A stretch of DNA of 56,634 bases, the filler included, from Basidiobolus meristosporus CBS 931.73 (Eukaryota; Fungi; Basidiobolomycota): the NCBI GenBank assembly GCA_002104905.1. It is 3 parts of 3 records of this genome, joined end to end, with 100 filler letters (N's around TTAATTAATTAA, not from the genome) between each part and the next. Parts side by side here need not be neighbours in the genome. Positions count along the whole stretch, not along the records: positions 1 to 17,732 come from MCFE01001084.1; 2 more parts are not named here. One strand, 5' to 3'. Position 1 is the stretch's first letter. Each line of letters begins with the position of its first letter. The notes under the pieces are model-generated. The model saw only the letters and a program-made list of their open reading frames with translations. It was not told where the DNA came from and made no database searches. A program made the position numbers and the translations under genes. Positions 1 to 17,732 of the stretch are shown here, one piece after another.

Positions 1-141
1 GTATGTTCATGTGCTCGCCCCCTCATTCGTCCACCCGCACTTCGGTACGCGGCGGGTTCGGCGGAAGGGATGAGTGGGCTGCGAGACGGAGGCTCCCAAG
101 AGTTAGACCAACTAACAAAGAGTTTTGCATTTGTGGCACAG
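1..141 (+). other. Spliceosomal intron of the sugar transporter gene
   Basis: GTATGT donor at 1, ACTAAC branch point at 110-115, CACAG acceptor at 137-141. The following G would complete a TGG (Trp) codon before GFAVAVF, as expected in this family; the upstream exon is outside the window. Confidence 0.7.
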
Positions 142-1354
142 GGGTTTTGCAGTGGCGGTGTTCGCATTGGGAGGCTTGGTCGGGGGATTCTTTGCCGGGC
201 CTAGTGCCGACAGAGTTGGCAGAAAGAAGGTTCTGTTCTGGAACAACTTGAACTTCGTCATTGGGGCTGTGCTCTTGGCAGCCTCGGTCAATGTTCCCAT
301 GTTCATTATCGGTCGTTTCTTCGTGGGTATTGGAAGTGGAGCTGGATCCGCGATTGTCCCGATGTACATTGCCGAGGTATCCACCACCAGATACCGTGGG
401 GCCATGGGGGCCCTTCTCCAAATCTTCCTTGCTTTGGGTATCTTGATCTCCCAAGCACTGGGACTGGCCATGAACACTGTCCCAACCTGGAGAGGAATCT
501 TCGCCATCACCGCCGCCCCAGGAATACTCCAGATGGTTCTTTTGCTGTTCTGCTGCGAAACACCTAGATTCTTGCTCACCCAGAACCAGGTCGAGGAGGC
601 CAAGAAGACCCTGCAGAAGCTCAGATCGGGGGCCCACATCGAGAATGAGTTCCACGAGATGTCCACTGGTGTTCAAGGTGTGAATCACGAGCATGATATG
701 TCTGCTGGGCACCAGGAGGCCAGCCTCACCCAACGAATCAAGGATGTCTTTGCCGACAAGTTCGTCAGAAGAATGCTCTTCATCGGCATGGGTATCCACG
801 CCTCCCAGCAGCTCTCAGGTATCAACGGAGTCAGTTTCTACTCGACAGCCATCCTCACTGAGGCTACTGGCGCCGACACTGCCTCGGGAATCACCGTGGG
901 TATCTCTGGACTCAACTTTGTCATCAACTGCATCATCTCCTTCATAGTGGACAGATTCGGCAGAAGACCATTGTTGATGACCAGCTCCACTGGTATGGGG
1001 GTTTTCGCATTGCTTCTAGTCATCGGTGATGCGACCCATGTCAACGCCCTCAAGGTGCTTTCAGTGATCTGCTTCGCGGCCTCGTTCAACATTGGCCTTG
1101 GGTGTGTCCCCTTCATGATCACCCCGGAGATGGTCCCAACCTGGGCGGCTGGTGTGGTCATCTCGACCGCAACCACGGTCAACTGGATCTGCAACTTCAT
1201 AGTCGGCTTCATATTCCCAACCTTGATCAATGCCATGGGCTCGAAGGTCTTCATCATCTTTGTTGTACTCAACTTCCTGTTCTTGATCTTTGACTACGTC
1301 TTTGTGCCCGAGACCAAGGGCAAGACTGTTGAGGAGATCTCCCAAGGACATTAA
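142..1354 (+). CDS. MFS sugar porter (GLUT/HXT-like), last exon; N-terminus upstream of the window
   Basis: ORF 125..1354 has sugar-porter motifs ADRVGRKK, PMYIAEVS, YRGAMG, CETPRFL, QQLSGIN, VDRFGRRPLL and VPETKGKTVEEI, with multiple hydrophobic helices. Confidence 0.95.
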
Positions 1355-1885
1355 CACATATACGATACGGTAAGCTAGCAAATATCATCGGTCGTTATTA
1401 CAATTTTTGCAATAAATATTGTATTTGCCAGAACCCAAAGCATTTTCTTTGATGTACTACGTTTCCTCTGTCCAGTTATTCAACCAGTAGTGTTCTATTC
1501 CCTGTGACGAATACTTATTGCAGTTACCTATTGCAGATTAAGAGTTCTGATAATGTTGTATCATAGAAATTAGTTTCTGATTAAATTTCGGGTCTCAAGA
1601 GTAATGGTCAACTCTTTGATATTGAATTGCATTCTATTAGTCCTAGCAAAGAAATCAAAATGATATTCAGCTTTGTAACCCGCTGGTAGGATGGACTGGC
1701 ATCACCAAAGGAATGTATGTCATCTTCTGCCCTGCTGTCAATAGGGCAATTAAAATTGTATCCTCAATTTTGGTATGTCAAAATCAAGTCATTTCCTCAG
1801 ATATTGGTTTGTAGAGTACACAAATTGAGGCTTCATGCTCTAGCCAATTTCAGTGCATCTCCATGATTGCAGACTTGCTAGATAA

Positions 1886-2228
1886 TGCTGTATACTTTGT
1901 AGTTACACCCAAATATTCACTTGACTTTTTCACTTCGATCATGATCTACAGTTCTTAGATTATTCTGGCCAAATTCCTTGCTAGGACTGACTTGAAATAT
2001 TTCACCAAAATATCAGGTATTCAGGACATGAAAGTGTAAAGTTGTCCAAAGAGCCCCAAGCTTTTTACACATGCTCTTGGCACTTTCCTAACCATCTTCT
2101 ATGTGTTTGTTTTTTCATGACCCTGCAAAAGTATAAACACCACTTTTACATTCAGTAACAGTAAATGAGAAACACATGGTTTATTTGTCCTCCCAATTAC
2201 TTCCTACATCCCCAAAACTCTTGCAACG
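1886..2228 (+). mobile_element. Degenerate LTR of the ~349 bp copia LTR family
   Basis: Aligns by eye along its length to LTR 22838-23186 (ccaaattccttg, aaagttgtccaaa, cttttacattca blocks). Confidence 0.75.
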
Positions 2229-4449
2229 GATAGTACCATCCATTGCCATACACTGAGGGATCTATAGAAGCTGATTCTGATAACTCTGTCAAGACTTGGA
2301 ATCTTGCTTACATTTGTTACCAACAAGGGCAAGTCATACTGTTTCTCTTTTGGCCTTTGAAATGCTATGTAAGAGTTGGCAGCATATTTGGCTATGTTCA
2401 TTTTGGTGGGACAATAACAAGGATCAACAGACTCTGAATCTCAGTGCTTGTGATTGAAGGGGTTAGCTATGTAGTTGAACCAATGTTGTGCGACATTCTG
2501 CTGAGAATACCCGTAGTCAATTAGTATTCTAACAGTAAGTGTCCTTAGTACTACCAGTGGTAAGCGTCCCACCTTGGTCTATTTACAAAAGAAGTCCACC
2601 ACTGCATTTAATCTTTGACTCCCTTGGACGCTAAAAGGCTACATCCGAAGGCAACCGGTTAAGTAGGTTATTGGGCCGGGGTGATTTCTATGATGACTGG
2701 CAATATATTAGCTTGAAGTTTTCTGAATACTAGGAAAATATAACTTTGTTTATTGAAACATTATCTCGCCGATTTTGATACAGATTTGTTAAGCTAGTAC
2801 TGAGCCACACTTTGAATGGTCTTTGGGCAGATGGTATATTGAAGTGTCTAGGCTAACTTTGGAATCGACTTCTCTTCCGAGTCTCCCCTAAAAAATGGAC
2901 AAAAACCATCGATTGAACTATTCCAAACCACCATTACAGGATATACTATAGATGTTCCATAGAATGATGGAATAACCTCAAGCTTTACGCATGTCCTTCA
3001 GCGGCACTCCACAGCTTACTCCTACATATGTTCTCACCCCATTTCTGTATTTAGAGGTCCAGAGTTTTACCACAGGTATGCATTACCACTCCATAGCAAA
3101 TCCGTAAGTAAACAAAAGCCTCGTGGCATATGCTCCAAACTACTTCGTAGTTTCCATATCCGCTTAGTTCAAAGTCATTTGAAAGCATGTGCTTTGTAAT
3201 TGGCGTCTGATGGATTCTAGACTGGTGCAAATTACATTCACACAATGTTCCCACAATGCTGAAGATTTAAAAAACTCATCTCAATAAATATCCCATAGGT
3301 TCAGCAAGAAGTGATGAATAATTAGGTGCACAGGCAGCATCCAGAATTGTGTTGGTACTATCATATAGTTCGTTGCATAGTTATTGAATTACTTGGCTTT
3401 ATATACATTTTTCTTGGGTCATAATAATGCAATCCCATGATTGCTGATCAAGCTTGATCATAATTCTGGCACACGAGTAATGTCGCACTTTTGTTAACTA
3501 CTATTCAAATCCTTGCCGTCAATTCCATACACAACTTGTAAATCGTCAGTAAATAACGGATCCATCTGGATTGATGGAACATACTTCCCAGGCACTTTGG
3601 GGGTGGGCGTAGTCAAAATCAACACTTCTAGCCTTACTGAAAGCCCTGCTCACAAGTATCATGAAACCCGCGAACTTCCATAGCAATGCGTCCAAAGTAC
3701 AGGGTTTCATCTAGAACACCGAACCAAAATCAAACTTCAATACCTTACAAACAATGGATGTCATGCCTATCTTATCTTAATGTGGCGCACAAGACTGTTG
3801 GAACAGTGAAAATTCCTATTACAGCGTATGGATGCAACAGATTGCGCCAAGACTGGACATCTCTGGCTTATCGTCCTGTTCGAGAAAAATCTACTGTGAT
3901 TGGGCGACTGTCAAACAAATAGGAATCAATTCTTCGGTACGGGCTATGGTTCCTAACTCTGATTGTTCTTGCTGCACTGTTCTGTCTTTAATTCAGTTCA
4001 AACCGAAAGTGGGCAAATGCAGGAATATTCCACAAACATCAGCCAATTTTACTGGTTCGTGGGGGTATTTACGAAGAGTTGGGGAGTGCGCTGTTGCTAT
4101 ATCGAAAATACTGCCAAACAGGCCGATTCCCTGATTGGGTGAATCTTCGCTTTTCAAAAACAAATCACGATTTTCGTTAGATAGTGTGCTATTCTGGAAC
4201 GTTATGGTCATATAAACATTGCATTAGTTACAATCCAGGGTAAAGCAATAAAAGGCTCAGTCTCTATTTGATATCAAGGAATCAGTGTCTATAAAGTTGA
4301 GCGTCTTTACTAATTGTCAGTAGTGTGCAGAACTCCTGGAAGGTGGGAGTTTGATGAAATGATGAAACAGAGGGCCTCACTAATCAGCCAATACTAGACC
4401 TCGTGCCAGATCTGGTGCTATCCTTGGGCAGCAATGGATGATCGAAAAC

Positions 4450-5394
4450 CTACTTTTTCTCCAATTCCATCACAGAGTAACTGGTATTTGGTTCCGTTAA
4501 TCCGAATGTCAGGTACCGGCCTGGTGGAATCAGAATATACGCAGATATGGCAATCAACATCATGAGGCAATCAAATACATAAAAGTACACCTCATGAGTA
4601 ATCAGGTATCCCTCAAAGCCTTGAGCAAATTCGGCAAGTCGATACGCAGATCGAATGACAAGTGTAACGATGTTAATCCATACAGGCCAGTATATGGTAC
4701 GCCAGCGCGCAGGGCTATGGGTATCATCAGTTGCAAATCTTGGGGAGTGTTGAACAAACCAAGTCAAGATGACAAATGTGGATAGAGATACAAATGCCAA
4801 GCTGAGCCCTGCTAGGGAGATGTTCGAGCCAAGGTTTGCCATTGACCTTATGGCCATCATACCACCACCGCCTGACTGAATCAGAAAGCAGATCACATCA
4901 ACAGATACGTAAGACTTCTCTACCAGTGATGGCCGAATGTATTTAGACTTGAAGTTAGAGGCAGTTATACTATAAGGTCAAAAAATTGTAAGCAAAGTGT
5001 TGCGCAAGTCATATATGGACGAATACGTACATCCTAGCCACTACTATGTAGCTACCCAGGGCAATCACAATGGGTGGGAGTAGAAGAAAAAGAGTCGAGG
5101 TCGCATAGGCTCCGATATTTCCGGTGTTTTCGGGTTGAGCTGACCATATGCGTGTAGCATAGCCCACTGCTTCGGCTGGCAAGATGCTGATTATCAGTAT
5201 AACAAGCCGTGTGCATTATTGTCACAAGAAGCTTTACCTGCTGCTCCGCATGCTACTGCGTACATGTAACCGGTTTTGTAACGGAAGGCTTGATAAGATA
5301 CGATCACAGCGAACAGAGAAAACAAGATCAAGGCAACCACCGCCAAAGGTATATTGGGGTCATAGTGGTACAGGTTGTAATGGGTACTAGGCAT
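4450..5394 (-). CDS. RTA1-family lipid-translocating exporter/resistance protein, 3 exons (5394-5238, 5175-5031, 4969-4450), 273 aa
   Basis: Splicing two GT-AG introns (62 and 61 nt) gives one open frame with RTA1 motifs YHYDPN, EAVGYATR, LLLPP, FLIQSGGGG, IRSAYRLAEF and HEVYFYVFD. Confidence 0.9.
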
Positions 5395-6471
5395 TGTAAA
5401 GTTCACTAAGTGTGCGGCCAGAGGCGTGGGTTTATATCTAGATTCGCATTTGTGATGAATAGGAAGCTGAACGGAATTCTATTAATAGAATCATCAAAAA
5501 CCTATCTTGGCTTCTTGGCAAATCCAAAAAATAAATGTGAAAAATCAAGTTAGGCTGTTCGCCACCGAAAATTGAATCTAACATTTCCAACATTTGATGG
5601 AAGCTAGCAGAAACCAAGTAAATGTACCCAAGACTAGCTGTAGAGCACTTGCGATTCAATCCCTAGATAGAGATAATCTACGATTCAATACACCGGCCGC
5701 CTTTTTCCGCATAGAATATCCCAGAAACATATAAAAGCAAGGTGCTACGAGCCAACTGGCATGATTCTTTTTATGTGAGTAAATGCGGACATACTTGCAT
5801 GTACTAATCGCCGAGAGGGCTCTTGGCATTATTGCCAGCCAATTTCAAGGTACACCAGCGCTTGCGATCCAATAGCTTGGCAATACTATCCCTTGGGAAA
5901 TTATTTCCAGGGCTCCGTGCAATAGCCCTACCCCACCTCCACTAACCATAAGCATCGCTTCATATCTCCTTTCTAAGCCTTGTAGGGAGGTGGATTAAGA
6001 ATTACTGGAAGACGATGATGGTTGTTATGCTTGGTATGAGTCCTGTAGGCGGATAGGTGGGGTATATCTTTTTGGCTGCTATTTCGCACCATAGTTCGGA
6101 GTGTATATTTCATTCAATGATTCCCAGATGATAACATGCACAAAAGATATGCATGCGTATCTACCTTTTACAGCAAAGGGTGCTTCTGGGTATGAATATC
6201 TTTATCCAAAGATCTCCCAAAATGAAGCAAGGAAAGAAATCGAGATACTCTAGATAACTTATTTGCTCTCTTAAGCCAATAGAGTGTTGCGCTTACTGTG
6301 ATACATTTCTATGGAAATATCAGCTATGGATTCCATATGAAATTGTGCTGGAGTTTTTCAGCCAAACTTCTATGTGTGCATATCTCTGGAGTGAGCCTTA
6401 ATGCAAAGTCCCAAAGTTGGAATCCATTAGATTTTTAGCTGGTACTCAGCTGGTATTCTGATAGTATTCAC

Positions 6472-6516
6472 TGTTGTAAAAGCTCATAATTGCACCTGAA
6501 TACTCACCTAACTTAG
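6472..6516 (+). mobile_element. First 45 bp of a copia LTR, cut off at its TTAG
   Basis: tgttgtaaaa...cacctaacttag matches the start of LTR 22838; the rest of the LTR does not follow. Confidence 0.7.
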
Positions 6517-6866
6517 GGGGGAGGGAAAGTCACCAAGTTGGTGAAATCTTTATTTGCTTTCAAGAACTAATCTAAGCACAAATAGAGAAGCCAATCAGGA
6601 GGTAGAGATTCTCTCTAATAAGCAATCTAATGTATGTCTTGATTCATGTCTAATGGCAGTCATAATCAAGTAAAGTTCACTCGGTGTTAATATGAAATTC
6701 AAGGGTTTTTTTTGGGGGGAGGGAGTACTAATTGTAAGTCTTTCTAATCAATCTAATCTAAGACTGGCATACAGCCTGGCATCAGGTGCAGTAGAAATGG
6801 TGTGTTAACTTGTAGGTAGCTCTCCCATATTGATCTTAGATGGTCTTGTGTCAATAGCCTAGGTTT
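6513..6866 (-). mobile_element. 3' end of a third, diverged telomeric retroelement family
   Basis: Begins TTAGGGGGG-AGGGAAAGTCACC-AAGTT-GGTGAAATCTTTATTT and carries the GAAGCCAA block, then diverges from both the LINE and the SINE. The distal boundary is set by an LTR insertion. Confidence 0.55.
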
Positions 6867-7015
6867 TGTTGCAAGAGTCTTGGAGATATTAGAAAAGACT
6901 GGGAGAACAGGCAGATTAGGTGGTTTTCACTAAATGATTTTCTGAATGTAAAAGTGGTATTCATATCTTTCATGTTCTGGGCATCTTATGCACTTAAGAA
7001 AATATTAAACAGAAA
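6867..7015 (-). mobile_element. Truncated, internally deleted copia LTR
   Basis: tgttgcaagagtcttggagatatt is the reverse complement of the LTR 3' end; similarity stops just before GGGTTTGGGGG at 7016. Confidence 0.7.
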
Positions 7016-7018
7016 GGG

Positions 7019-7166
7019 TTTGGGGGAGGAAAGTCACCAAGTTGTGAAATCTTTATTTATTTATGACAAATATTGAAGGAAGCCAAGTTAATCTGAAGGA
7101 CCTCCTAAAAGCAAGGTCTGAGAGATATTTTCCCGGTAAGCCAGTTTGGAGAGTAGAAAGGCTGAG
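7019..7166 (-). mobile_element. Decayed 3' part of the telomeric SINE
   Basis: Collinear with 10642-10790 (ggaaagtcacc, gaagccaagttaatctgaag, ggtctgagagatat) with many substitutions. Confidence 0.85.
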
Positions 7167-7308
7167 TGTTGTGCTCAGCATTGAAAACTTTGCCAATTTC
7201 ACTCCGTTAGAAGTTCTAGCATCCTAACTGATTTTTCCTAACCCCAACATAGTTAATAATGGTTATAGTTTAACTTATCACTTCTCAGAATCTATTTTTA
7301 GCTGTCAC
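7167..7308 (+). mobile_element. First 142 bp of a chromovirus LTR, ending abruptly at TTAGGG
   Basis: Starts TGTTGTGC and aligns to 25638-25780 (ccaatttcactc, tatcacttctcagaatctat); TTAGGGCTAGG follows at 7309. Confidence 0.8.
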
Positions 7309-7340
7309 TTAGGGCTAGGAGGATCATAATCACCAAAGGG

Positions 7341-7447
7341 TTAGGGGGAGACAGTCACCAATAGGTGAAATCATTATTTCTGTTGAAACAAAGAAGCCAG
7401 CGCTACTGTTGTAGCTTTGATACAAGAGTGTGTAGCTGAGGGGAATT
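7341..7447 (-). mobile_element. ~105 bp 3' stub of the telomeric LINE
   Basis: Near-identical to 7475-7582 (3' UTR plus last ORF2 codons); truncated at ...GGAATT, which runs into AGGG. Confidence 0.9.
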
Positions 7448-7474
7448 AGGGCTAGGGTTAGGGTTAGGGTAGGG
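7446..7474 (+). repeat. Interstitial degenerate telomere tract (5 units)
   Basis: TTAGGG CTAGGG TTAGGG TTAGGG TAGGG between two LINE copies. Confidence 0.9.
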
Positions 7475-10400
7475 TTAGGGGGGAGACAGTCACCAACAGG
7501 TGAAATCTTTATTTCAGTTGAAACAAAGAAGCCAGCGCTACTGTTGTAGCTTTGTTACAAGAGTGTGTAGCTGAGGGGAATTTGTAGGTAAGTTAATAAG
7601 AAGTGATGATAGTTCTTCAGTGCTCAAGACACTGTTCAGTGGGAAGGGGGGTAGCAAGAGAGGTAAGAATGACTTGTGAACAACATTAATGAGGGGAATG
7701 TGATAAGGATTGATATTCATCATATAGGGAGTGTGCTGCTGCAGATATTGCTGCCAAAGGTCTGTCAAGTACTTCAGGTAGGCCAGCTTGGGTTTTTCTG
7801 ACTGCAGAATATAGTGAGCAAACTTCTTGACTTCAGGATCTCCAAGTATAGTTCTCCAGCAGGAGTCAGGTGTTGTGTGGTGTGTTCTCTTCCAGGCCTT
7901 AATCAGTGGGTTGTTGCAGTTGTGAAGTCTGAGGTATAATCTGGTTCTAAGGTAGAGAAGTCTGATCTTATAGGGCATAAACCCAAAAGCACCAAGAATA
8001 GCATGTCTGTAGGGGCATTCAGGCAAATGAGGCACCAAGGAGGTAATGCACCATACTGCAAACTTGTCAAGCTTAGTGCAGTCTCTAGAAGTAAGAGAGA
8101 GAAGTGGTAAGCCAAATTCCAGGACAGGGAAGACAAACTGCTTGAGTAGAAGGAGGCAGCTGGGAGCTGAAGTTGTAGGAGGAGTAACAGCCAGTAGCTT
8201 GTGGAGTGCCTGTCTTGCCAGGATAATTCTCTTCTTCAGGTGTGCTCCAGAGTCTAGTCCAGTAGGAAGGAAAGGAAAGCCAAGATATGTAGCAGAAACC
8301 TGAGCAGGTAGAGTGGAGTTCTCCAAGTTGATGGGAGAGCCCAAAGGTACTGTCTTTGCAATGGAAAGCTGGAGATTATTCTTCTGCAGATACTGGTGGA
8401 TGGTCTGGGAGTCTTGTTGCACATTGGAGGAGGAAATTCTGATGTCATCAGCAAAGAGAGTAACCAGGCAGTCAGCTGAGAGTCTTGGGAAATCATTCAG
8501 GAAGATGGCAAACAGTATAGGACCAAGCACAGAGCCTTGAACCACTCCATTAGGAACTGAGAACACAGCTGATTGCTCACTTGGGTGCAGAATTCTTGCT
8601 TGTGGATCCAGAAACAGAGATCTGACAAGGAGGGTGAGAGAGGTACTGGAGAAGCATTGCAACTTGGACCAAAGCAGATTTCTGTCAACTGAATCAAAGG
8701 CCTTAGTAATATCAAACAGAACAGAGGGATACTTGCACTGGAGAGAGTGATCTTGGCTAAGTATGACTGCATATTCCAAGGAGAGGCCAGGAACAAAGCC
8801 AAACTGTGCAGGATGAAACTTGAGGGAGTCAGAGTAGAGCTCCTGAGCAAGCAGAAGCTCAAACACCTTTCTGCAGGTGGGCAGCAGAGATATTGGCCTG
8901 TAGGAGCTAGGATCCAGGTGCTTTCCTTTACCCTTGTACAGTGGCAGAACATTTGCAAAGGACCATTCCTCAGGAGTAGAAAGCTGGGCTGAGCATTGCT
9001 GAAACAGTGGAAGCAGAAGTGCAGACATGGCCTTGGTACTAGTCTTCAGAAGCTCATAGGAGATTGTGTCCACACCTGGAGCAGTAGAGTTGGGAAGCCT
9101 CTTGAGCACATTATGGATTCTCCTTTGATCAAGTGCAAGTGGGATGGGCAGAGTCTTGAAGTCAGGATGAAAGCCAGGAGTTGAGTACTGCTTTGTAGAG
9201 AAGAAGATGTTAGCCAGCTGTTCTGTTGAAGGTAACTTCCTGGAAGAGGGCCTCATTGCCCTGTAGAGTCTTGATATTGTTCTTGTTATAGAGTTGGAAG
9301 ATTGCAGAGGCAAAGAACTCATAATATGATCCCAGAGCTGAGTATGCAGAGTGTGGTGAATTGCCTTGGAGTGGTGTATTGCTTTCAGGAGGAGTTTCTC
9401 TGTTTTTGGGTTAGGGAAACTCAGGTAGCTTTGTTGCAGGGCTGAAACAATGGATTCCCATTTTCTTGAGGTAACAGCAGTAGTCTTGCATGGCAGTGAG
9501 AGGGAGGCAGACACCAGAATCAGATGCTTCACAAAGAGCCAGGCATAGTTGAGATCATCTGGCAGAGAAAGTAGCAAACTGGCAAGCTTCAAGTAGTTCC
9601 CAAAGTCTTTCTTCTGATTCTTGGTAGCTTTGTGGGTAAGCACAGTAAGTTTTGGCAGCTTCCTCTTCACAACTGGTTACATAGAAAGGGACCAGGCTGG
9701 GTGGTCAGAGGCTCTCAAGGATCCTAGCTCAGCTCCAGAGAATTGCTTAACTTCATTCACAAAGTAGAGGGCAGCAGCAGAAGGGCAGATCCAGTCAACA
9801 CATCTTTTCTCAGATTGAGCACCTAGTGCTAGCAGGTGGCTTTCTCTCAGGAAGTTCAGTAGGAATGTAGACCTTGGCTTCATTCTTGCAGTCAGAGTAG
9901 TCTTGTTCTCAGGATGGGGAATGTTGAGATCTCCAAGTAAGATAACAGGTGTTGATATAGATTGTTGGTATTGCTGAACCTTCTGGCATATAACTTGCAC
10001 TTCCTGAAGGGCAAGACTTGGAGGCAGATAGCAGAGCACCAGACTGATAGTTGGCAACTGGAGAGCAGCACAGTAAGGGGAGTAAAGAGGAACACAGAGC
10101 TGAGGAGTATTGATGGTAGAAGAGATGAAGCAGATAGAGGAGGTATTCTTTGTTCTAGGAGTAGAAAAGCAATATAGATCAGTCAAAAGTATAGAGGGTA
10201 GCTGAACATCAATCAAACACAGGAGGGAAAATCTTGAAAGAAGTCTCTCTAGAGTTGTTCTTGATGGCTGTATGCTGTTGCAGTTAAGCAACAGAACTTC
10301 AGGTAGTCAGGCAGAGGTTGTAGCTTCTTCAGAGGCAGCATTGATAATGTGACCTGCAGAGTCCCAGAGCTCTTCAAATGGTGCATCACTTAAGTCAGCA

Positions 10401-10643
10401 AGGAGGGAAATGGCATGATTCTTGAGGAATTATGGCACATCATAGGAGGGGGCTTGTCTCTTGATGGCAGCAAAGAAAGACAGAATGGCAACATGGGCTG
10501 GAGGCTTGTTGAACAGTAGAGAGTCAGAGGATTCAGATTCTTCAGGCACTATCTTGAAGTCAGTTTTCAGCCAGTTAAGGTTCTTCTCCACAAAGGCAAC
10601 AAATGGGTCAGCAATGTTTGGTCTAGGATAACTCCAGAATCTT
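7475..10643 (-). mobile_element. Telomeric LINE copy 1, 5'-truncated within ORF1
   Basis: About 99% identical to 12917-16087 (roughly 25-30 differences counted by eye). Contains all of ORF2 and the last ~110 codons of ORF1. No poly(A) tail and no TSD seen. Confidence 0.95.
7538..10306 (-). pseudogene. LINE ORF2 (APE endonuclease + reverse transcriptase) with one premature stop at 9674-9676
   Basis: APE motifs NCN, YLPP, GDLN, VDW, SDH; RT motifs APGVD, YRPISLL, QFGF, FDITKAFD, GVVQGSVLGP, LFADD, YLG. TAA here corresponds to CAA in copy 2. Confidence 0.93.
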
Positions 10644-11167
10644 AGGGGGAGGAAAGTCACCAAGTGGTGAAATCTTTATTTACTTATGACAAGTATCTAA
10701 AGAAGCCAAGTTAATCTGAAGTAATTCCTAGAAAGCTAGGTCTGAGAGATATCTTCCTGGTAAGCCAGGTCTGAGAGTTGAGAAGCTGAGTGGTACTATA
10801 TTTCCTAGTTAGCTAGGTCTGAGAGAGGTTTCCTGGAAAGCCAGGCCTGAGAAGTGAGAATCTGAGTATATCTGAGGTGAGTTGTACTGATTTGCGGTAG
10901 CTTGTTTGTGGCCAGAATGGCCAGTAGACTGGGGGAACTTAGGGTATTTCTGGGCGATCACTGGCCAAATTTACTAGGCAAATTTGACCAATTAGCATTT
11001 CAAGGATTTCAGCCAATCAGAGCCTTTACTTTGCCCAATGGTTGATCAAGCCATCTCCCAATGAGCACACATCAATTTATTGATCAAATTTTGTTGGATC
11101 CAGGATTTGAACCCACAACCATGGGTATGGAAGGGTTAGGGATAACCACAAGGCTAAGTGTTCTTGG
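10642..11167 (-). mobile_element. Telomeric SINE unit 1 (526 bp), the most diverged full unit
   Basis: tRNA-like A/B-box head at the distal end, LINE-like 3' terminus at the proximal end, no meaningful ORF. Confidence 0.85.
11103..11156 (-). promoter_or_regulatory. RNA polymerase III type-2 internal promoter (repeated in units 2-4)
   Basis: A box TAGCCTTGTGG (11156-11146; consensus TRGCNNAGYGG, 1 mismatch). B box GGTTCAAATCC (11113-11103; fits GTTCRANNC). The 32-nt spacer is as in an intronless tRNA. Confidence 0.8.
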
Positions 11168-11693
11168 TTAGGGGAGGAAAGTCACCAAGTGGTGAAATCT
11201 TTATTTACTTATGACAAGTATCTAAAGAAGCCAAGTTAATCTGAAGTAATTCCTAGAAAGCTAGGTCTGAGAGATATCTTCCTGGTAAGCCAGGTCTGAG
11301 AGTTGAGAGGCTGAGTGGTACTATATTTCCTAGTTAGCTAGGTCTGAGAGAGGTTTCCTGGAAAGCCAGGCCTGAGAAGTGAGAATCTGAATATATCTGA
11401 GTTAAGTTATACTGGTTTGCGGTAGCTGAATTGTGGCCAGAATGGCCAGTAGACTGGGGGAACTGAGATGAATTTCTGGGCGATCACTGGCCAAATTTAC
11501 TAGGCAAATCTGACCAATTAGCATTTCAAGGATTTCAGCCAATCAGAGCCTTTACTTTGCCCGATGGTTGATCAAGCCATCTCCCAATGAGCACACATCA
11601 ATTTATTGATCAAATTTTGCTGGATCCAGGATTTGAACCCACAACCATGGGTATGGAAGGGTTAGGGATAACCACAAGGCTAAGTGTTCTTGG
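11168..11693 (-). mobile_element. Telomeric SINE unit 2 (526 bp)
   Basis: Direct repeat of unit 1; starts TTAGGGG. Confidence 0.85.
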
Positions 11694-12221
11694 TTAGGGG
11701 GGAGGAAAGTCACCAAGTGGTGAAATCTTTATTTACTTATGACAAGTATCTAAAGAAGCCAAGTTAATCTGAAGTTATTCCTAGAAAGCTAGGTCTGAGA
11801 GATATCTTCCTGGTAAGCCAGGTCTGAGAGTTGAGAGTCTGAGTGGTACTATACTTCCTAGTTAGCTAGGTCTGAGAGAGGTTTCCTGGAAAGCCAGGCC
11901 TGAGAAGTGAGAATCTGAATATATCTGAGCTAAGTTATACTGGTTTGCGGTAGCTGAATTGTGGCCAGAATGGCCAGTAGACTGGGGGAACTGAGATGAA
12001 TTTCTGGGCGATCACTGGCCAAATTTACTAGGCAAATCTGGCCAATTAGCATTTCAAGGATTTCAGCCAATCAGAGCCTTTACTTTGCCCAATGGTTGAT
12101 CAAGCCATCTCCCAATGAGCACACATCAATTTATTGATCAAATTTTGCTGGATCCAGGATTTGAACCCACAACCATGGGTATGGAAGGGTTAGGGATAAA
12201 CACAAGGCTAAGTGTTCTTGG
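11694..12221 (-). mobile_element. Telomeric SINE unit 3 (528 bp)
   Basis: Direct repeat; starts TTAGGGGGG and is followed by an extra TTAGGG (12222-12227). Confidence 0.85.
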
Positions 12222-12227
12222 TTAGGG

Positions 12228-12757
12228 TTAGGGGGGAGGAAAGTCACCAAGTGGTGAAATCTTTATTTACTTATGACAAGTATCTAAAGAAGCCAAGTTA
12301 ATCTGAAGTAATTCCTACAAAGCTAGGTCTGAGAGATATCTTCCTGGTAAGCCAGGTCTGAGAGTTGAGAAGACTGAGTGGTACTATATTTCCTAGTTAG
12401 CTAGGTCTGAGAGAGGTTTCCTGGAAAGCCAGGCCTGAGAAGTGAGAATCTGAATATATCTGAGCTAAGTTATACTGGTTTGCGGTAGCTGAATTGTGGC
12501 CAGAATGGCCAGTAGACTGGGGGAACTGAGAGGAATTTCTGGGCGATCACTGGCCAAATTTACTAGGCAAATCTGGCCAATTAGCATTTCAAGGATCTCA
12601 GCCAATCAGAGCCTTTACTTTGCCCGATGGTTGATCAAGCCATCTCCCAATGAGCACACATCAATTTATTAATCAAATTTTGCTGAATCCAGGATTTGAA
12701 CCCACAACCATGGGTATGGAAGGGTTAGGGATAACCACAAGGCTAAGTGTTCTTAGG
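12228..12757 (-). mobile_element. Telomeric SINE unit 4 (530 bp)
   Basis: Direct repeat; starts TTAGGGGGG. Confidence 0.85.
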
Positions 12758-12916
12758 TTAGGGGGGGAGGAAAGTCACCAAGTGGTGAAATCTTTATTTA
12801 CTTATGACAAGTATCTAAAGAAGCCAAGTTAATCTGAAGTAATTCCTAGAAAGCTAGGACTGAGAGATATCTTCCTGGTTAACCAGGTCTGAGAGTCAAG
12901 AAGCTGAGTGGTACTG
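12758..12916 (-). mobile_element. Telomeric SINE unit 5, 5'-truncated (~158 bp)
   Basis: Only the 3' part is present; it stops at GGTACT and is followed by GTTAGGGGGG and the LINE. Confidence 0.85.
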
Positions 12917-12979
12917 TTAGGGGGGAGACAGTCACCAACAGGTGAAATCTTTATTTCAGTTGAAACAAAGAAGCCAGTG

Positions 12980-15749
12980 CTACTGTTGTAGCTTTGATAC
13001 AAGAGTGTGTAGCTGAGGGGAATTTGTAGGTAAGTTAATAAGAAGTGATGATAGTTCTTCAGTGCTCAAGACACTGTTCAGTGGGAAGGGGGGTAGCAAG
13101 AGAGGTAAGAGTGACTTGTGAACAACATTAATGAGGGGAATGTGAGAAGGATTGATATTCATCATAAAGGGAGTGTGCTGCTGCAGATATTGCTGCCAAA
13201 GGTCTGTCAAGTACTTCAGGTAGGCCAGCTTGGGTTTTTCTGACTGCAGAATATAGTGAGCAAACTTCTTGACTTCAGGATCTCCAAGTATAGTTCTCCA
13301 GCAGGAGTCAGGTGTTGTGTGGTGTGTTCTCTTCCAGGCCTTAATCAGTGGGTTGTTGCAGTTGTGAAGTCTGAGGTATAATCTGGTTCTAAGGTAGAGA
13401 AGTCTGATCTTATAGGGCATAAACCCAAAAGCACCAAGAATAGCATGTCTGTAGGGGCATTCAGGCAAATGAGGCACCAAGGAGGTAATGCACCATACTG
13501 CAAACTTGTCAAGCTTAGTGCAGTCTCTAGAAGTAAGAGAGAGAAGTGGTAAGCCAAATTCCAGGACAGGGAAGACAAACTGCTTGAGTAGAAGGAGGCA
13601 GCTGGGAGCTGAAGTTGTAGGAGGAGTAACAGCCAGTAGCTTGTGGAGTGCCTGTCTTGCCAGGATAATTCTCTTCTTCAGGTGTGCTCCAGAGTCTAGT
13701 CCAGTAGGAAGGAAAGGAAAGCCAAGATATGTAGCAGAAACCTGAGCAGGTAGAGTGGAGTTCTCCAAGTTGATGGGAGAGCCCAAAGGTACTGTCTTTG
13801 CAATGGAAAGCTGGAGATTATTCTTCTGCAGATACTGGTGGATGGTCTGGGAGTCTTGTTGCACATTGGAGGAGGATATTCTGATGTCATCAGCAAAGAG
13901 AGTAACCAGGCAGTCAGCTGAGAGTCTTGGGAAATCATTCAGGAAGATGGCAAACAGTATAGGACCAAGCACAGAGCCTTGAACCACTCCATTAGGAACT
14001 GAGAACACAGCTGATTGCTCACTTGGGTGCAGAATTCTTGCTTGTGGATCCAGAAACAGAGACCTGACAAGGAGGGTGAGAGAGGTACTGGAGAAGCATT
14101 GCAACTTGGACCAAAGCAGATTTCTGTCAACTGAATCAAAGGCCTTAGTAATATCAAACAGAACAGAGGGATACTTGCACTGCGAGAGAGTGATCTTGGC
14201 TAAGTATGACTGCATATTCCAAGGAGAGGCCAGGAACAAAGCCAAACTGTGCAGGATGAAACTTGAGGGAGTCAGAGTAGAGCTCCTGAGCAAGCAGAAG
14301 CTCAAACACCTTTCTGCAGGTGGGCAGCAGAGATATTGGCCTGTAGGAGCTAGGATCCAGGTGCTTTCCTTTACCCTTGTACAGTGGCAGAACATTTGCA
14401 AAGGACCATTCCTCAGGAGTAGAAAGCTGGGCTGAGCATTGCTGAAACAGTGGAAGCAGAAGTGCAGACATGGCCTTGGTACTAGTCTTCAGAAGCTCAT
14501 AGGAGATTGTGTCCACACCTGGAGCAGTAGAGTTGGGAAGCCTCTTGAGCACATTATGGATTCTCCTTTGATCAAGTGCAAGTGGGATGGGCAGAGTCTT
14601 GAAGTCAGGATGAAAGCCAGGAGTTGAGTACTGCTTTGTAGAGAAGAAGATGTTAGCCAGCTGTTCTGTTGAAGGTAACTTCCTGGAAGAGGGCCTCATT
14701 GCCCTGTAGAGTCTTGATACTGTTCTTGTTATAGAGTTGGAAGATTGCAGAGGCAAGGAACTCATAATATGATCCCAGAGCTGAGTATGCAGAGTGTGGT
14801 GAATTGCCTTGGAGTGGTGTATTGCTGTCAGGAGGAGTTTCTCTGTTTTTGGGTTAGGGAAGCTCAGGTAGCTTTGTTGCAGGGCTGAAACAATGGATTC
14901 CCATTTTCTTGAGGTAACAGCAGTAGTCTTGCATGGCAGTGAGAGGGAGGCAGACACCAGAATCAGATGCTTCACAAAGAGCCAGGCATAGTTGAGATCA
15001 TCTGGCAGAGAAAGTAGCAAACTGGCAAGCTTCAAGTAGTTCCCAAAGTCTTTCTTCTGATTCTTGGTAGCTTTGTGGGTGAGCACAGTAAGTTTTGGCA
15101 GCTTCTTCTTCACAACTGGTTGCATAGAAAGGGACCAGGCTGGGTGGTCAGAGGCTCTCAAGGATCCTAGCTCAGCTCCAGAGAATTGCTTAACTTCATT
15201 CACAAAGTAGAGGGCAGCAGCAGAAGGGCAGATCCAGTCAACACATCTTTTCTCAGATTGAGCACCTAGTGCTAGCAGGTGGCTTTCTCTCAGGAAGTTC
15301 AGTAGGAATGTAGACCTTGGCTTCATTCTTGCAGTCAGAGTAGTCTTGTTCTCAGGATGGGGAATGTTGAGATCTCCAAGCAAGATAACAGGTGTTGATA
15401 TAGATTGTTGGTATTGCTGAACCTTCTGGCATATAACTTGCACTTCCTGAAGGGCAAGACTTGGAGGCAGATAGCAGAGCACCAGACTGATAGTTGGCAA
15501 CTGGAGAGCAGCACAGTAAGGGGAGTAAAGAGGAACACAGAGCTGAGGAGTATTGATGGTAGAAGAGATGAAGCAGATAGAGGAGGTATTCTTTGTTCTA
15601 GGAGTAGAAAAGCAATATAGATTAGTCAAAAGTATAGAGGGTAGCTGGACATCAATCAAACACAGGAGGGAAAATCTTGAAAGAAGTCTCTCTAGAGTTG
15701 GTCTTGATGGCTGTATGCTGTTGCAGTTAAGCAACAGAACTTCAGGTAG
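12980..15749 (-). CDS. LINE ORF2 (APE + RT, ~920 aa when repaired) with a +1 frameshift at 14183
   Basis: ORFs 14154..15734 and 12980..14401 join if the extra C at 14183 (CTGCGAGA versus CTGGAGA in copy 1) is removed. The frame is open from the codon after the ORF1 stop. Confidence 0.9.
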
Positions 15750-17258
15750 TCAGGCAGAGGTTGTAGCTTCTTCAGAGGCAGCATTGACAATGTGACCTGC
15801 AGAGTCCCAGAGCTCTTCAAATGGTGCATCACTTAAGTCAGCAAGGAGGGAAATGGCATGGTTCTTGAGGAAGTATGCCACATCATAGGAGGGGGCTTGT
15901 CTCTTGATGGCAGCAAAGAAAGACAGAATGGCAACATGGGCTGGAGGCTTGTTGAACAGTAGAGAGTCAGAGGATTCAGATTCTTCAGGCACTATCTTGA
16001 AGTCAGTTTTCAGCCAGTTAAGGTTCTTCTCCACAAAGGCAACAAATGGGTCAGCAATGTTTTGGTCTAGGATAACCTCCAGAATCTTCCCTTTTCTCCA
16101 GGCCAGGTTGACAATTCTTGAGAGCTGAATATTGCATGCCTTGAGTGCTTTCCTGATGTTGGAAATGGGAGTCCAGGGAACTTGCTTCAAGTACACCACA
16201 GTCCAGGTAGAAGCTGGTGGTAGGTTTGCTGGGGGCTTGTAAGTCCTTCTGTGTTGCAATGGAGCTGCAGTAGTCAGATTGGAGTCCACATTCTCAGTAG
16301 AAGGTTTTCTTGATGTGTCTTGCTGAATAGTACTGGAGCTGGATGTGCTGATAATTCTTGCTAGAACCTTGCCTGCATAAGTCTGAGGTATAGCTGAGGT
16401 GACTGTAGAGGTGGTGGCAGCTGGTGCAGGTGGAGAGGCAGAGACTGAAGCAGGAACTGAGGTCACCTGGGAGAAGGCAGTAGAAGCAGGTTTTCTGGGA
16501 GGAACAGAGTTCACTATCCAGTTGTTCTGTAAAACACTGGAGTAGCTTTTCTGTGGAACAGGATCTTGCTCTTGAACAGGAACAGAAGCAGGAGGCTGGG
16601 GCTGAGCAGTAGTGGTAAGGCAGTGGCACTCCAAGGAAGCTTTTTGCAAGGCATCTCTGGCAGTTTTCAGGGCAGTATTGGCTTCATTCTTGAGCTTCTT
16701 GCATTGGGCATCCAGTCTCTTGTTTTCAATAGCCAGGGCAGTATTGGCAGCCTCTAAATCAGCAATTCTCTTCTCAATTGCAAGGAATCTCTGAAGAAAT
16801 GCATCAGTAGAAGTGCTGGCATCTGGGAGAGCAGTGGCAGGAATAGAGTCCATTGACAGTGGGCTTCTTGGAGGCAAGGAAAGTGGACTGGCAGATTCAG
16901 GCACAAAAGGAGATATCCTGGCAGGAGGAGAAGGAGTATCCAAGGCAGTAACAGAGGCAATTCTTGTTGGTGAAGCAGCAGCAGGGGAGGCAAGCCTGTT
17001 CAGAAACTGGGCAGGAGAGAGTGCTTGAGGAGAGGGAGTCTTCAGCTTGCCAAGCATGTCTTCCATCAGAGTGATACCAATATTCCTGGTGCATTTGCAG
17101 AGAAAAGTAAGCTTCCTGAGTCTGCCAGCTCTTCCATTCCTTCTGATAGTTCCTTTGTTTCCACAGTTGGGGCAAGAAATCTTCTTGACAGACTTGTCAA
17201 AGCAATCAAGAACCTTCCTTTCAGGTGTAGTGGGCTCCTGTTGAGGTTTTGGTGGCAT
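15750..17258 (-). CDS. LINE ORF1 (502 aa): Zn-ribbon, Pro/Ser-rich linkers, coiled coil, probable RRM-like C-terminal domain
   Basis: ATG at 17258 (MPPK; the track start at 17285 is TTG). CPNC...FLCKC motif; heptad stretch FLAIEKRIADLEAANTALAIENKRLDAQCKKLK; C-terminal alpha/beta segment WTVVYLKQVP...ILEVILD. Confidence 0.88.
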   Translation of the reverse strand: MPPKPQQEPTTPERKVLDCFDKSVKKISCPNCGNKGTIRRNGRAGRLRKLTFLCKCTRNIGITLMEDMLGKLKTPSPQALSPAQFLNRLASPAAASPTRIASVTALDTPSPPARISPFVPESASPLSLPPRSPLSMDSIPATALPDASTSTDAFLQRFLAIEKRIADLEAANTALAIENKRLDAQCKKLKNEANTALKTARDALQKASLECHCLTTTAQPQPPASVPVQEQDPVPQKSYSSVLQNNWIVNSVPPRKPASTAFSQVTSVPASVSASPPAPAATTSTVTSAIPQTYAGKVLARIISTSSSSTIQQDTSRKPSTENVDSNLTTAAPLQHRRTYKPPANLPPASTWTVVYLKQVPWTPISNIRKALKACNIQLSRIVNLAWRKGKILEVILDQNIADPFVAFVEKNLNWLKTDFKIVPEESESSDSLLFNKPPAHVAILSFFAAIKRQAPSYDVAYFLKNHAISLLADLSDAPFEELWDSAGHIVNAASEEATTSA

Positions 17259-17327
17259 ATCCAGAGTTTCAGCTTCAAATTTCAATTTTTGAGATTTTTG
17301 GGTGATTTTTGATGGGCGGGATCAAAA

Positions 17328-17341
17328 TTAGGGTTAGGGTT
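17328..17341 (+). repeat. Internal telomere repeat TTAGGGTTAGGGTT
   Basis: Directly visible 70 nt upstream of the ORF1 ATG. Confidence 0.9.
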
Positions 17342-17382
17342 GCGCGCTGTGACTGCTTTTTACGATCGCAAGGTCAGAACCT

Positions 17383-17573
17383 AGGAAAAAATAAAAATAG
17401 TTAGTAAAGGTGATTTAATGGATGGATGGATGGATTCGGAGTCAGATTCAATCAAAAAATCAAATCGTTGACTAATTTAAAGAGGAAAAAATAAAAATAG
17501 TTAGTAAAGGTGATTTAATGGATGGATGGATGGATTCGGAGTCAGATTCAATCAAAAAATCAAATCGTTGACT
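17383..17573. repeat. Exact 91-bp direct duplication (period 100) containing (GGAT)n
   Basis: 17383-17473 equals 17483-17573, with a 9-nt spacer AATTTAAAG. Confidence 0.95.
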
Positions 17574-17732
17574 TAGAGGTTAGGGTTAGGGTTAGGGTTA
17601 GGGTTAGGGTTAGGGTTAGGGTTAGGGTTAGGGTTAGGGTTAGGGTTAGGGTTAGGGTTAGGGTTAGGGTTAGGGTTAGGGTTAGGGTTAGGGTTAGGGT
17701 TAGGGTTAGGGTTAGGGTTAGGGTTAGGGGGT
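17574..17732 (+). repeat. Telomere (TTAGGG)25
   Basis: Perfect repeats 17580-17729, preceded by TAGAGG and ending GGT at the contig end; the G-rich strand runs toward the end as expected. Confidence 0.97.

Follow-up and report, generated by a model that had tools for sequence, protein, structure and literature searches.

In the fungus Basidiobolus meristosporus CBS 931.73 (assembly GCA_002104905.1), we found at a chromosome end a tandem array of non-coding units that is probably a telomeric retroposon built like a short interspersed element (SINE), with a head derived from tRNA-Gly, a unique body, and a tail of the type carried by long interspersed elements (LINEs). The window analyzed here is a stretch of 56,634 nucleotides joined from three records of this genome, and all positions count along it; positions 1 to 17,732 come from MCFE01001084.1. 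The anatomy of the unit, its orientation, its junctions, its resemblance to tRNA, the tail shared with LINEs, and its presence in multiple copies in the genome were directly observed.

As shown by a repeat finder and multiple alignment, positions 10642-12916 comprise four full units (521-527 bp, approximately 524 bp), designated U1 to U4, and one 152-nt 3' fragment (U5), all on the minus strand (Table 1). The start-to-start spacings given by the repeat finder were 525, 528, 535, and 530 bp, and no open reading frame (ORF) longer than 60 amino acids was found in the array. The four full non-coding units and the 5'-truncated one of the preliminary description were thereby confirmed. The body of the unit consists of approximately 410 nt of unique sequence with an internal 76-nt duplication, and U5 matched unit positions 373-524 at 96%. 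The junction letters were TTAGGGGG between the proximal LINE (LINE-A copy 1) and U1, TTAGGGG between U1 and U2, TTAGGGGGG between U2 and U3, TTAGGGTTAGGGGGG between U3 and U4, TTAGGGGGGG between U4 and U5, and GTTAGGGGGG between U5 and the distal LINE. All junctions differed, with G4, G5, G6, G6 plus an extra TTAGGG (12222-12236, the proximal junction of U4), G7, and G6 at the change to the LINE, and long-read homopolymer error is possible in these run lengths. The range from G4 to G7 and the single extra TTAGGG, both described before, were borne out by this direct reading.

U2, U3, and U4 were 97.9-98.5% identical to each other, and U1 was 96.2-96.9% identical to them. The comparison of U1 with U2 (96.9%) revealed 12 differences private to U1, several of which (e.g., at the bases homologous to 11391 and 11402) recurred in at least 20 other contigs of a short-read run of the same strain, termed X1. 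U1 is therefore a member of a minor subfamily, and its differences are largely subfamily variants and not simply the result of age or random decay. The innermost unit is indeed the most diverged, as had been noticed earlier. In run X1, the unit occurred on more than 2000 contig pieces, with recurrent subfamily variants and varied truncation points, a number that is not normalized to a single-copy gene. The summed word depth over the SINE (window 11140-11720 on run X1) amounted to hundreds of thousands, compared to 50-170 for single variant contigs, which hints at hundreds to thousands of copies.

The junctions were then compared across the window, two further B. meristosporus contig ends (L001 and L002), and Logan and ENA contigs of relatives. 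The same order of tail, C-run, and TAACCC was read at each of the six SINE-related 3' junctions and at every LINE junction. L001 and L002 also contained head-to-tail LINE arrays with CCCTAA junctions. In the window, a one-way minus-strand stack of retroelements with no other content spans approximately 6513 to 17573, and every element in it has its 3' end on TTAGGG-type sequence and its 5' end toward the tip. In contigs of run X1, some copies were cut off 35, 37, 77, 116, or 172 nt from the 3' end and continued into TTAGGG-type letters and then a new tail. These TTAGGG joints and truncated copies contradict the refuting case considered earlier, an ordinary satellite without telomeric junctions or 5' truncations. 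The other loose ends of the unit in this run were short and mixed and could not be assigned to telomeric or other sites. The G-runs of 4-7 at the SINE junctions equal the C4 of the element itself plus 0-3 of the telomeric GGG, and this range would fit pairing of the RNA 3' end with the priming DNA end over a microhomology of variable length, although homopolymer error may contribute to it. On the sequence evidence, and for the junctions seen, the unit is very likely a non-autonomous retroposon that depends on LINEs and targets telomeres.

The shared tail and candidate LINE partners

The preliminary description held that the unit carries the 3' terminus of the neighboring LINE and is apparently mobilized by it. 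The sharing itself was confirmed, but its extent was limited to the last 40 nt or so. In order, this tail consists of AAATAAAGATTTCACC, a loop, and GGTGACTTTCCTCCCC, and the general motif is AAATAAAGATT(T/A)CACC, a loop of 4-6 nt, GGTG, 6-8 nt, a C-run, and then TAACCC. The motif recurred in LINE-A, in LINE-B (L001 and L002; approximately 66% nucleotide identity to LINE-A), in the LINEs of loci L003-L009, in the L022/L023 family, in two small elements, and in a gag-only element of L002. The hairpin was kept in nine tails from at least four LINE families and small elements, with a 5-bp stem, variable loops, and one compensatory pair. AATAAA was present in every tail, approximately 30 nt from the 3' end.

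The SINE tail was 95% identical to that of LINE-B and 87% identical to that of the neighboring LINE-A. Since the tail of LINE-B is the closest, LINE-B is the likeliest mobilizer and LINE-A is not the best candidate, with 40 nt as a thin basis for this comparison. LINE-A encodes an ORF2 with Pfam matches to Exo_endo_phos_2 and Exo_endo_phos, in which the GDLN and SDH motifs are kept, and its reverse transcriptase (RT) aligned to structures of human L1 ORF2p. The RT was 96 and 64% identical to two NCBI proteins of B. meristosporus CBS 931.73, and at most 36% identical to sequences outside those of Basidiobolus type.

Several observations concern the internal structure of these elements. The two larger LINE-A copies carry different defects, and the in-frame stop of copy 1 falls between the endonuclease and RT parts. 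LINE-A copy 2 is directly capped by the telomere. In its 5' untranslated region (UTR), 100 bp are duplicated exactly (17383-17573), and AACCCTAACCCTAA occurs internally (17329-17342), a repeat that the related 5' UTRs of L004 and L022 lack. Motifs of the LINE-A 5' UTR recurred in the related LINE of L004, right after its tail and telomere repeat. LINE ORF2 sequences hold an internal CCCTAACCC coding for FPNP (L003 3' end; L024:1867-1874; L022:2491 and 7601), and a truncated L003 copy starts exactly at CCCTAACCC after a telomere junction, which suggests either 5' joining guided by microhomology or healing at telomere-like seeds within the element. The gag-only element was present as two 5'-truncated copies without ORF2 (L002:1-638 and L002:1624-2147). 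Its ORF1-like frame was 35% identical to residues 371-496 of LINE-A ORF1 (E 3e-14) and stops approximately 130 nt before the LINE-type tail.

The tRNA-like head and RNA polymerase III

Read on the minus strand, a full unit starts with CCAAGAACACT, followed by the A box TAGCCTTGTGG, exactly 32 nt, and the B box GGTTCAAATCC. Such a head with boxes 32 nt apart, as previously proposed, was found in all four full units. The A box matched TRGCNNAGTGG at 10 of 11 positions and the B box matched at 11 of 11. The exact B-box pattern occurred at four places in the window, all of them heads, compared to 0.17 expected, and it was absent from approximately 80 kb of related loci (L001-L010). By an analytic estimate, the chance of an A box plus a B box at tRNA spacing is approximately 5e-6 per unit.

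To trace the origin of the head, a 23-nt gapped pattern of its letters (GTGGTTATC, ACCCTTCCA, and GGTTC) was used, which retrieved 11 loci among 241 million metagenome records. All 11 were tRNA-Gly(UCC) genes according to ARAGORN. Aligned end to end with metagenome tRNA-Gly(UCC), a yeast-type sequence that may not match the host's own, the head was identical at 43 of 73 positions, with an equal A-to-B distance of 32 nt. The conserved blocks were the D-loop/A box, the anticodon loop, and the T-arm/B box. Among 3000 dinucleotide shuffles of the unit, not one scored as high (p about 1e-3), and Ala, Asn, and Thr tRNAs from the pattern-retrieved loci scored at noise level against the head. A sequence-only Infernal model of six real tRNAs matched only the four heads in the whole window, with the next match at E 3.3. 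The heads ranged from E 5e-4 (U2, 14.7 bits, 11627-11684) to E 0.018 (U3, 9.7 bits), scores that are inflated because the Gly sequences in the models came from the head-derived pattern. With nhmmer, the heads ranked first even with a hidden Markov model of non-Gly tRNAs, but at E values of just 0.3-0.8. The statistical support for tRNA ancestry is thus good by some methods and marginal by others, and descent of the head from tRNA-Gly(UCC) is likely. The resemblance to this tRNA reported in the preliminary description stands on the alignment and the Infernal scores and is weakened by the nhmmer values and the yeast-type comparison, and its statement that the tRNA stems no longer pair proved correct.

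The unit also shows features compatible with transcription by RNA polymerase III (Pol III). The equivalent of tRNA +1 is base 5 of the unit, and all four full copies start 2-4 nt upstream of it, which is where a Pol III start is expected. The sense strand of each unit contains eight TTT and no TTTT, as was the case for approximately 4% of shuffles; by contrast, the LINE contains 14 runs of T4 or longer. We infer from these features that the unit may be transcribed by Pol III.

A number of results weigh against the interpretation as a tRNA-headed SINE. There is no Pol III terminator after the unit, the first T4 downstream of the array being at 10231 inside the truncated LINE. If Pol III is used, its transcripts would either continue across junctions into more units or acquire their 3' ends in another way. 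An RNA-run search for the element gave two runs of unspecified kind with low shares, and no RNA run carrying the unit was identified. Besides the inflated model scores and the modest nhmmer values, a structural (cloverleaf) tRNA model gave only 5-8 bits on the heads (E 0.8 or worse), Rfam scans of the whole window (E up to 1) and of the head (E up to 10) had no tRNA match, and ARAGORN found no cloverleaf in the head at default or lowered thresholds, down to 60%. A comparison of the yeast-type tRNA-Gly(UCC) with four Basidiobolus runs placed no contigs, and a host tRNA-Gly was not retrieved. The part of the head formed by GTGGTTATC and CCCTAACCC also resembles the tail-plus-telomere junction of another small element (L003), with a score of 12.5 compared to 15.5 for the tRNA. 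Finally, assembled full SINE units were confined to this window, L001 and L002 having none. No further full unit was present in the LINE arrays and new LINE families reached via homologues of LINE ORF2 and ORF1 together with seven contig look-ups.

Some other candidates were tried and set aside. The ARAGORN calls obtained at lowered thresholds were spurious, lying on the opposite strand only, and ARAGORN found no tRNA genes in ten Basidiobolus-type loci. A 5' self-cleaving ribozyme in place of a promoter was without support, as the Rfam scans gave no hepatitis delta virus-like, hammerhead, or other RNA family. An origin of the head as a 5' tag from a tail/telomere junction was rejected on its lower score and retained only within one of the alternatives discussed below.

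Proposed mechanism and alternative explanations

For a SINE-built retroposon, the following mechanism can be proposed. The 73-nt 5' region would serve as the promoter head, having lost the cloverleaf fold but retained the anticodon-loop block and, at their native distance of 32 nt, the A and B boxes. Pol III would start 2-4 nt upstream of the tRNA +1 equivalent and would encounter no T4 run within the unit. The RT of a LINE, most likely of the LINE-B family, would bind the tail hairpin in trans. Reverse transcription would be primed by the 3'-OH of G-strand TTAGGG, at either a natural chromosome end or an endonuclease nick. Base pairing of 0-3 telomeric G with the C-run at the end of the RNA would give junctions from G4 to G7, and the cDNA would become the new chromosome end, with the 5' end of the element distal. 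Extension of this end by telomere repeats or by the next element would then lead to head-to-tail arrays.

A further reading, which we regard as unlikely, is that the SINE is more than a parasite of LINEs and acts as a Pol III-driven, end-extending module that aids telomere maintenance. The tRNA-Gly head would then have been remodelled, its D-stem/anticodon-stem segment having become CCCTAACCCT, and the RNA would start with CC. The cDNA would show GGGTTAGGG near its GG 3' end, a direct seed for telomerase or the next element, and terminator-free read-through of several units by Pol III would allow multi-unit blocks to be added in one event. B. meristosporus reportedly has an unusually high chromosome number.

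A less likely alternative is a telomere-targeted retroposon that is no SINE of the Pol III type. Its RNA would come from Pol II or from upstream read-through, as with HeT-A or MoTeR2, and the head would be vestigial or partly a 5' tag from an upstream tail/telomere junction. The AATAAA in every tail could be a Pol II cleavage signal, and the missing Pol III terminator and the lost cloverleaf also agree with this view. So does the head, which contains CCCTAACCCT and resembles the L003 small-element junction (score 12.5), as does the existence of other partners without a tRNA head, namely a 322-bp element (7019-7340) and the gag-only element of L002. However, the tRNA alignment outscored every tail alignment and stays collinear as far as the B box, which is perfect and lies at the native distance of 32 nt, all four full units start 2-4 nt upstream of the tRNA +1 equivalent, and TTTT is avoided on the sense strand over 524 nt.

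The growth of the array is a separate question. The tandem structure might go back to one or a few insertions and otherwise be mostly the result of DNA-level events, either unequal exchange or break-induced replication at interstitial telomere tracts, with U5 produced by erosion and healing; we consider this improbable, and it bears on the growth of the array alone and not on the status of the unit as a retroposon. The MoTeR arrays of Magnaporthe grow and shrink by break-induced replication at such tracts, MoTeR2 arrays gain or lose whole units in this way, and the 5' truncation of MoTeRs represents terminal loss with de novo telomere addition (PMC7367193). By this precedent, part of the tandem structure could be DNA-level, a point that also counts against our interpretation. 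Because the 5' ends of the units face the tip, erosion trims 5' ends, and the truncation of U5 alone is no proof of incomplete reverse transcription. The earlier view of this truncation as a hallmark of reverse transcription was not upheld, since erosion with healing gives an equal picture. On the other hand, the junctions all differ (one with an extra TTAGGG), the 5' terminus of U4 is different, the divergence between units is 1.5-3.8%, and the differences are of subfamily type, matching variants of many other genomic copies, which points to different source copies. For these reasons, separate additions derived from different source copies are favored. An ordinary subtelomeric satellite or an assembly artefact, with promoter- and LINE-like motifs arising by chance, is very improbable. 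The array is tandem with a period near 527 bp, and long-read assemblies may collapse or inflate such repeats. However, telomere repeats at all junctions, a 40-nt tail common to several LINE families, and truncated copies joined via TTAGGG in independent short-read contigs led us to reject this explanation, and the low chance of both boxes in one unit and the four B boxes compared to 0.17 expected also oppose it.

Relation to known elements and setting at the chromosome end

The unit was compared with known systems. Like the tRNA-SINEs with a stringent LINE-derived tail (eel UnaSINE1/UnaL2 and fungal AfuSINE2; PMC4176376, PMC5063351), it is short and non-coding, and its 5' head with A and B boxes is of apparent tRNA origin. 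It also shares with these SINEs a unique body, a short 3' stem-loop tail common with an autonomous LINE, subfamilies, and truncated copies. At 524 bp, it lies at the long end of the SINE range and under the size limit of approximately 700 bp. Unlike these SINEs, the Basidiobolus copies seen are not interspersed but lie in one orientation on telomere repeats, head to tail, and the unit has no poly(A) or simple-repeat tail, no target-site duplication, and no terminator after it.

Among telomeric elements, MoTeR1/MoTeR2 of Magnaporthe oryzae and the FoTeRs of Fusarium oxysporum (PMC7367193, PMC12857005) are likewise fungal and inserted in fixed orientation in (TTAGGG)n. They form head-to-tail arrays with very short stretches of telomere repeat between the elements, and they include a non-autonomous partner sharing termini as well as 5'-truncated copies. 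MoTeR2 shares 860 bp of its 5' end and 77 bp of its 3' end with MoTeR1 and has no tRNA-like head, whereas the Basidiobolus SINE shares a tail of approximately 40 nt and has such a head. The RT of MoTeR1 is accompanied by a restriction-enzyme-like endonuclease related to those of SLACS and CRE. The unit falls outside the MoTeR family because the endonuclease of the Basidiobolus LINEs is of the apurinic type.

The TRAS/SART elements of Bombyx mori (named in PMC10088271) resemble the Basidiobolus LINEs as autonomous partners with endonuclease and RT that are specific for telomeric repeats and coexist with telomerase repeats. The insect elements end in poly(A), unlike those of Basidiobolus. In SART1, the stem-loop of the 3' UTR and the downstream telomere-like sequence fix the start of reverse transcription. 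We know of no SINE partner of TRAS/SART, and the literature searches likewise gave none. The HeT-A/TART/TAHRE elements of Drosophila (PMC5537684) also form 3'-attached arrays with the 5' end distal and include autonomous as well as non-autonomous, gag-only members, and the gag-only partner of L002 is reminiscent of HeT-A. However, Drosophila lacks telomerase repeats, and HeT-A is a 6-kb Pol II element and not a Pol III-type SINE. Functionally, the unit would be a tRNA-SINE of the stringent type, coupled to LINEs specific for telomere repeats.

The catalogued telomeric retroelements are TRAS/SART, MoTeR, Zepp, GilM/T, Athena, Tx1-1_ACar, HeT-A/TART, and FoTeR. Full-text literature searches, whose incomplete coverage leaves room for an earlier description, gave no telomere-specific SINE, no Pol III-type SINE partner of any of these, and nothing on Basidiobolus retroelements. 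The element appears to be new, yet a natural extension of known principles; SINEs and telomere-specific LINEs are each well known. If confirmed, it would indicate that the telomere niche sustains a full hierarchy of LINE and SINE parasites, and Basidiobolus, an early-diverging fungus, would gain a community, not described before, in which telomeric LINEs with an endonuclease are accompanied by non-autonomous partners of at least three kinds. The 40-nt hairpin tail with its C-run would offer a compact natural substrate for studying the choice of RNA by a LINE RT and telomeric 3'-end priming, and the analogy between the SINE-LINE pair and telomerase RNA/TERT widens the interest in this question of RNA selection and priming.

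The plus strand of positions 1 to 17,732 reads toward the tip and ends in (TTAGGG)26, and this is therefore a chromosome end. The features of the stack are collected in Table 1. From proximal to distal, the order was a LINE-B-type tail relic, the 322-bp element, a LINE-A fragment with (TTAGGG)6, LINE-A copy 1, the five SINE-like units, a full-length LINE-A copy, and the telomere. The SINE array thus lies between two LINE copies encoding endonuclease and RT, approximately 4.7 kb from the terminal tract.

Table 1. Features of the telomeric retroelement stack in the window.
Feature	Position	Strand	Observations
LINE-B-type tail relic after junction TTAGGGGGG	6513-6559	-	Innermost junction of the array; unique subtelomeric DNA stops here
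Older non-coding 322-bp element	7019-7340	-	Repeat search, alignment; telomere-like junctions on both sides
LINE-A 3' fragment, 104 nt (7344-7447, minus strand), then interstitial (TTAGGG)6 (7446-7480)	7341-7480		
LINE-A copy 1, 5'-truncated within the endonuclease domain	7475-10641	-	In-frame stop 9677-9679; 99.2% identical to copy 2 over 3172 nt
SINE unit U1, full, innermost, minor subfamily	10645-11167	-	3' end on TTAGGGGG (10642-10649), which adjoins LINE-A copy 1 at its 5'-truncated end
SINE unit U2, full, reference	11171-11693	-	Head 11618-11689; A box 11672-11682; B box 11629-11639; tail hairpin region 11175-11212
SINE unit U3, full	11697-12221	-	B box 12157-12167; GTGG to GTGT change in A box
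SINE unit U4, full	12231-12757	-	B box 12692-12702; 5' end CCTAAGAAC in place of CCAAGAAC
SINE unit U5, 3' 152 nt only	12761-12915	-	Distally GTTAGGGGGG, then 3' end of LINE-A copy 2
LINE-A copy 2, full, about 4.66 kb	12917-17573	-	ORF1 15750-17285; ORF2 (endonuclease/RT) with frameshift between ~14154 and 14401
Terminal telomere tract (TTAGGG)26	17574-17729	+	Repeat search

The 3' 150 nt of the 322-bp element (7019-7168) were 87% identical to the 3' module of the SINE, while its 5' half was unrelated to the SINE, had no A or B box, and contained TTTT. It may be a second non-autonomous family based on the 3' module of the SINE. Sequence related to this element was present at L001:15838-15978, and both the element and U5 start near unit position 373-378. 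A degenerate GGGTTTTTTTTGGGGGG junction lies near 6703-6720, within the region of innermost array junctions (6513-6740). This junction and the one at 6513-6559 are fossils of older additions and mark the end of the unique subtelomeric DNA.

Ordinary genes occupy the proximal 5 kb of the window, including those for a sugar transporter (125-1354) and an RTA1-like protein (4450-4896). Just inside another Basidiobolus chromosome end, L002:10790-18266 contains five tandem genes (four of 181 amino acids and one of 231 amino acids) with a CHAP domain (PF05257), which is typical of cell-wall hydrolases from bacteria and phages.

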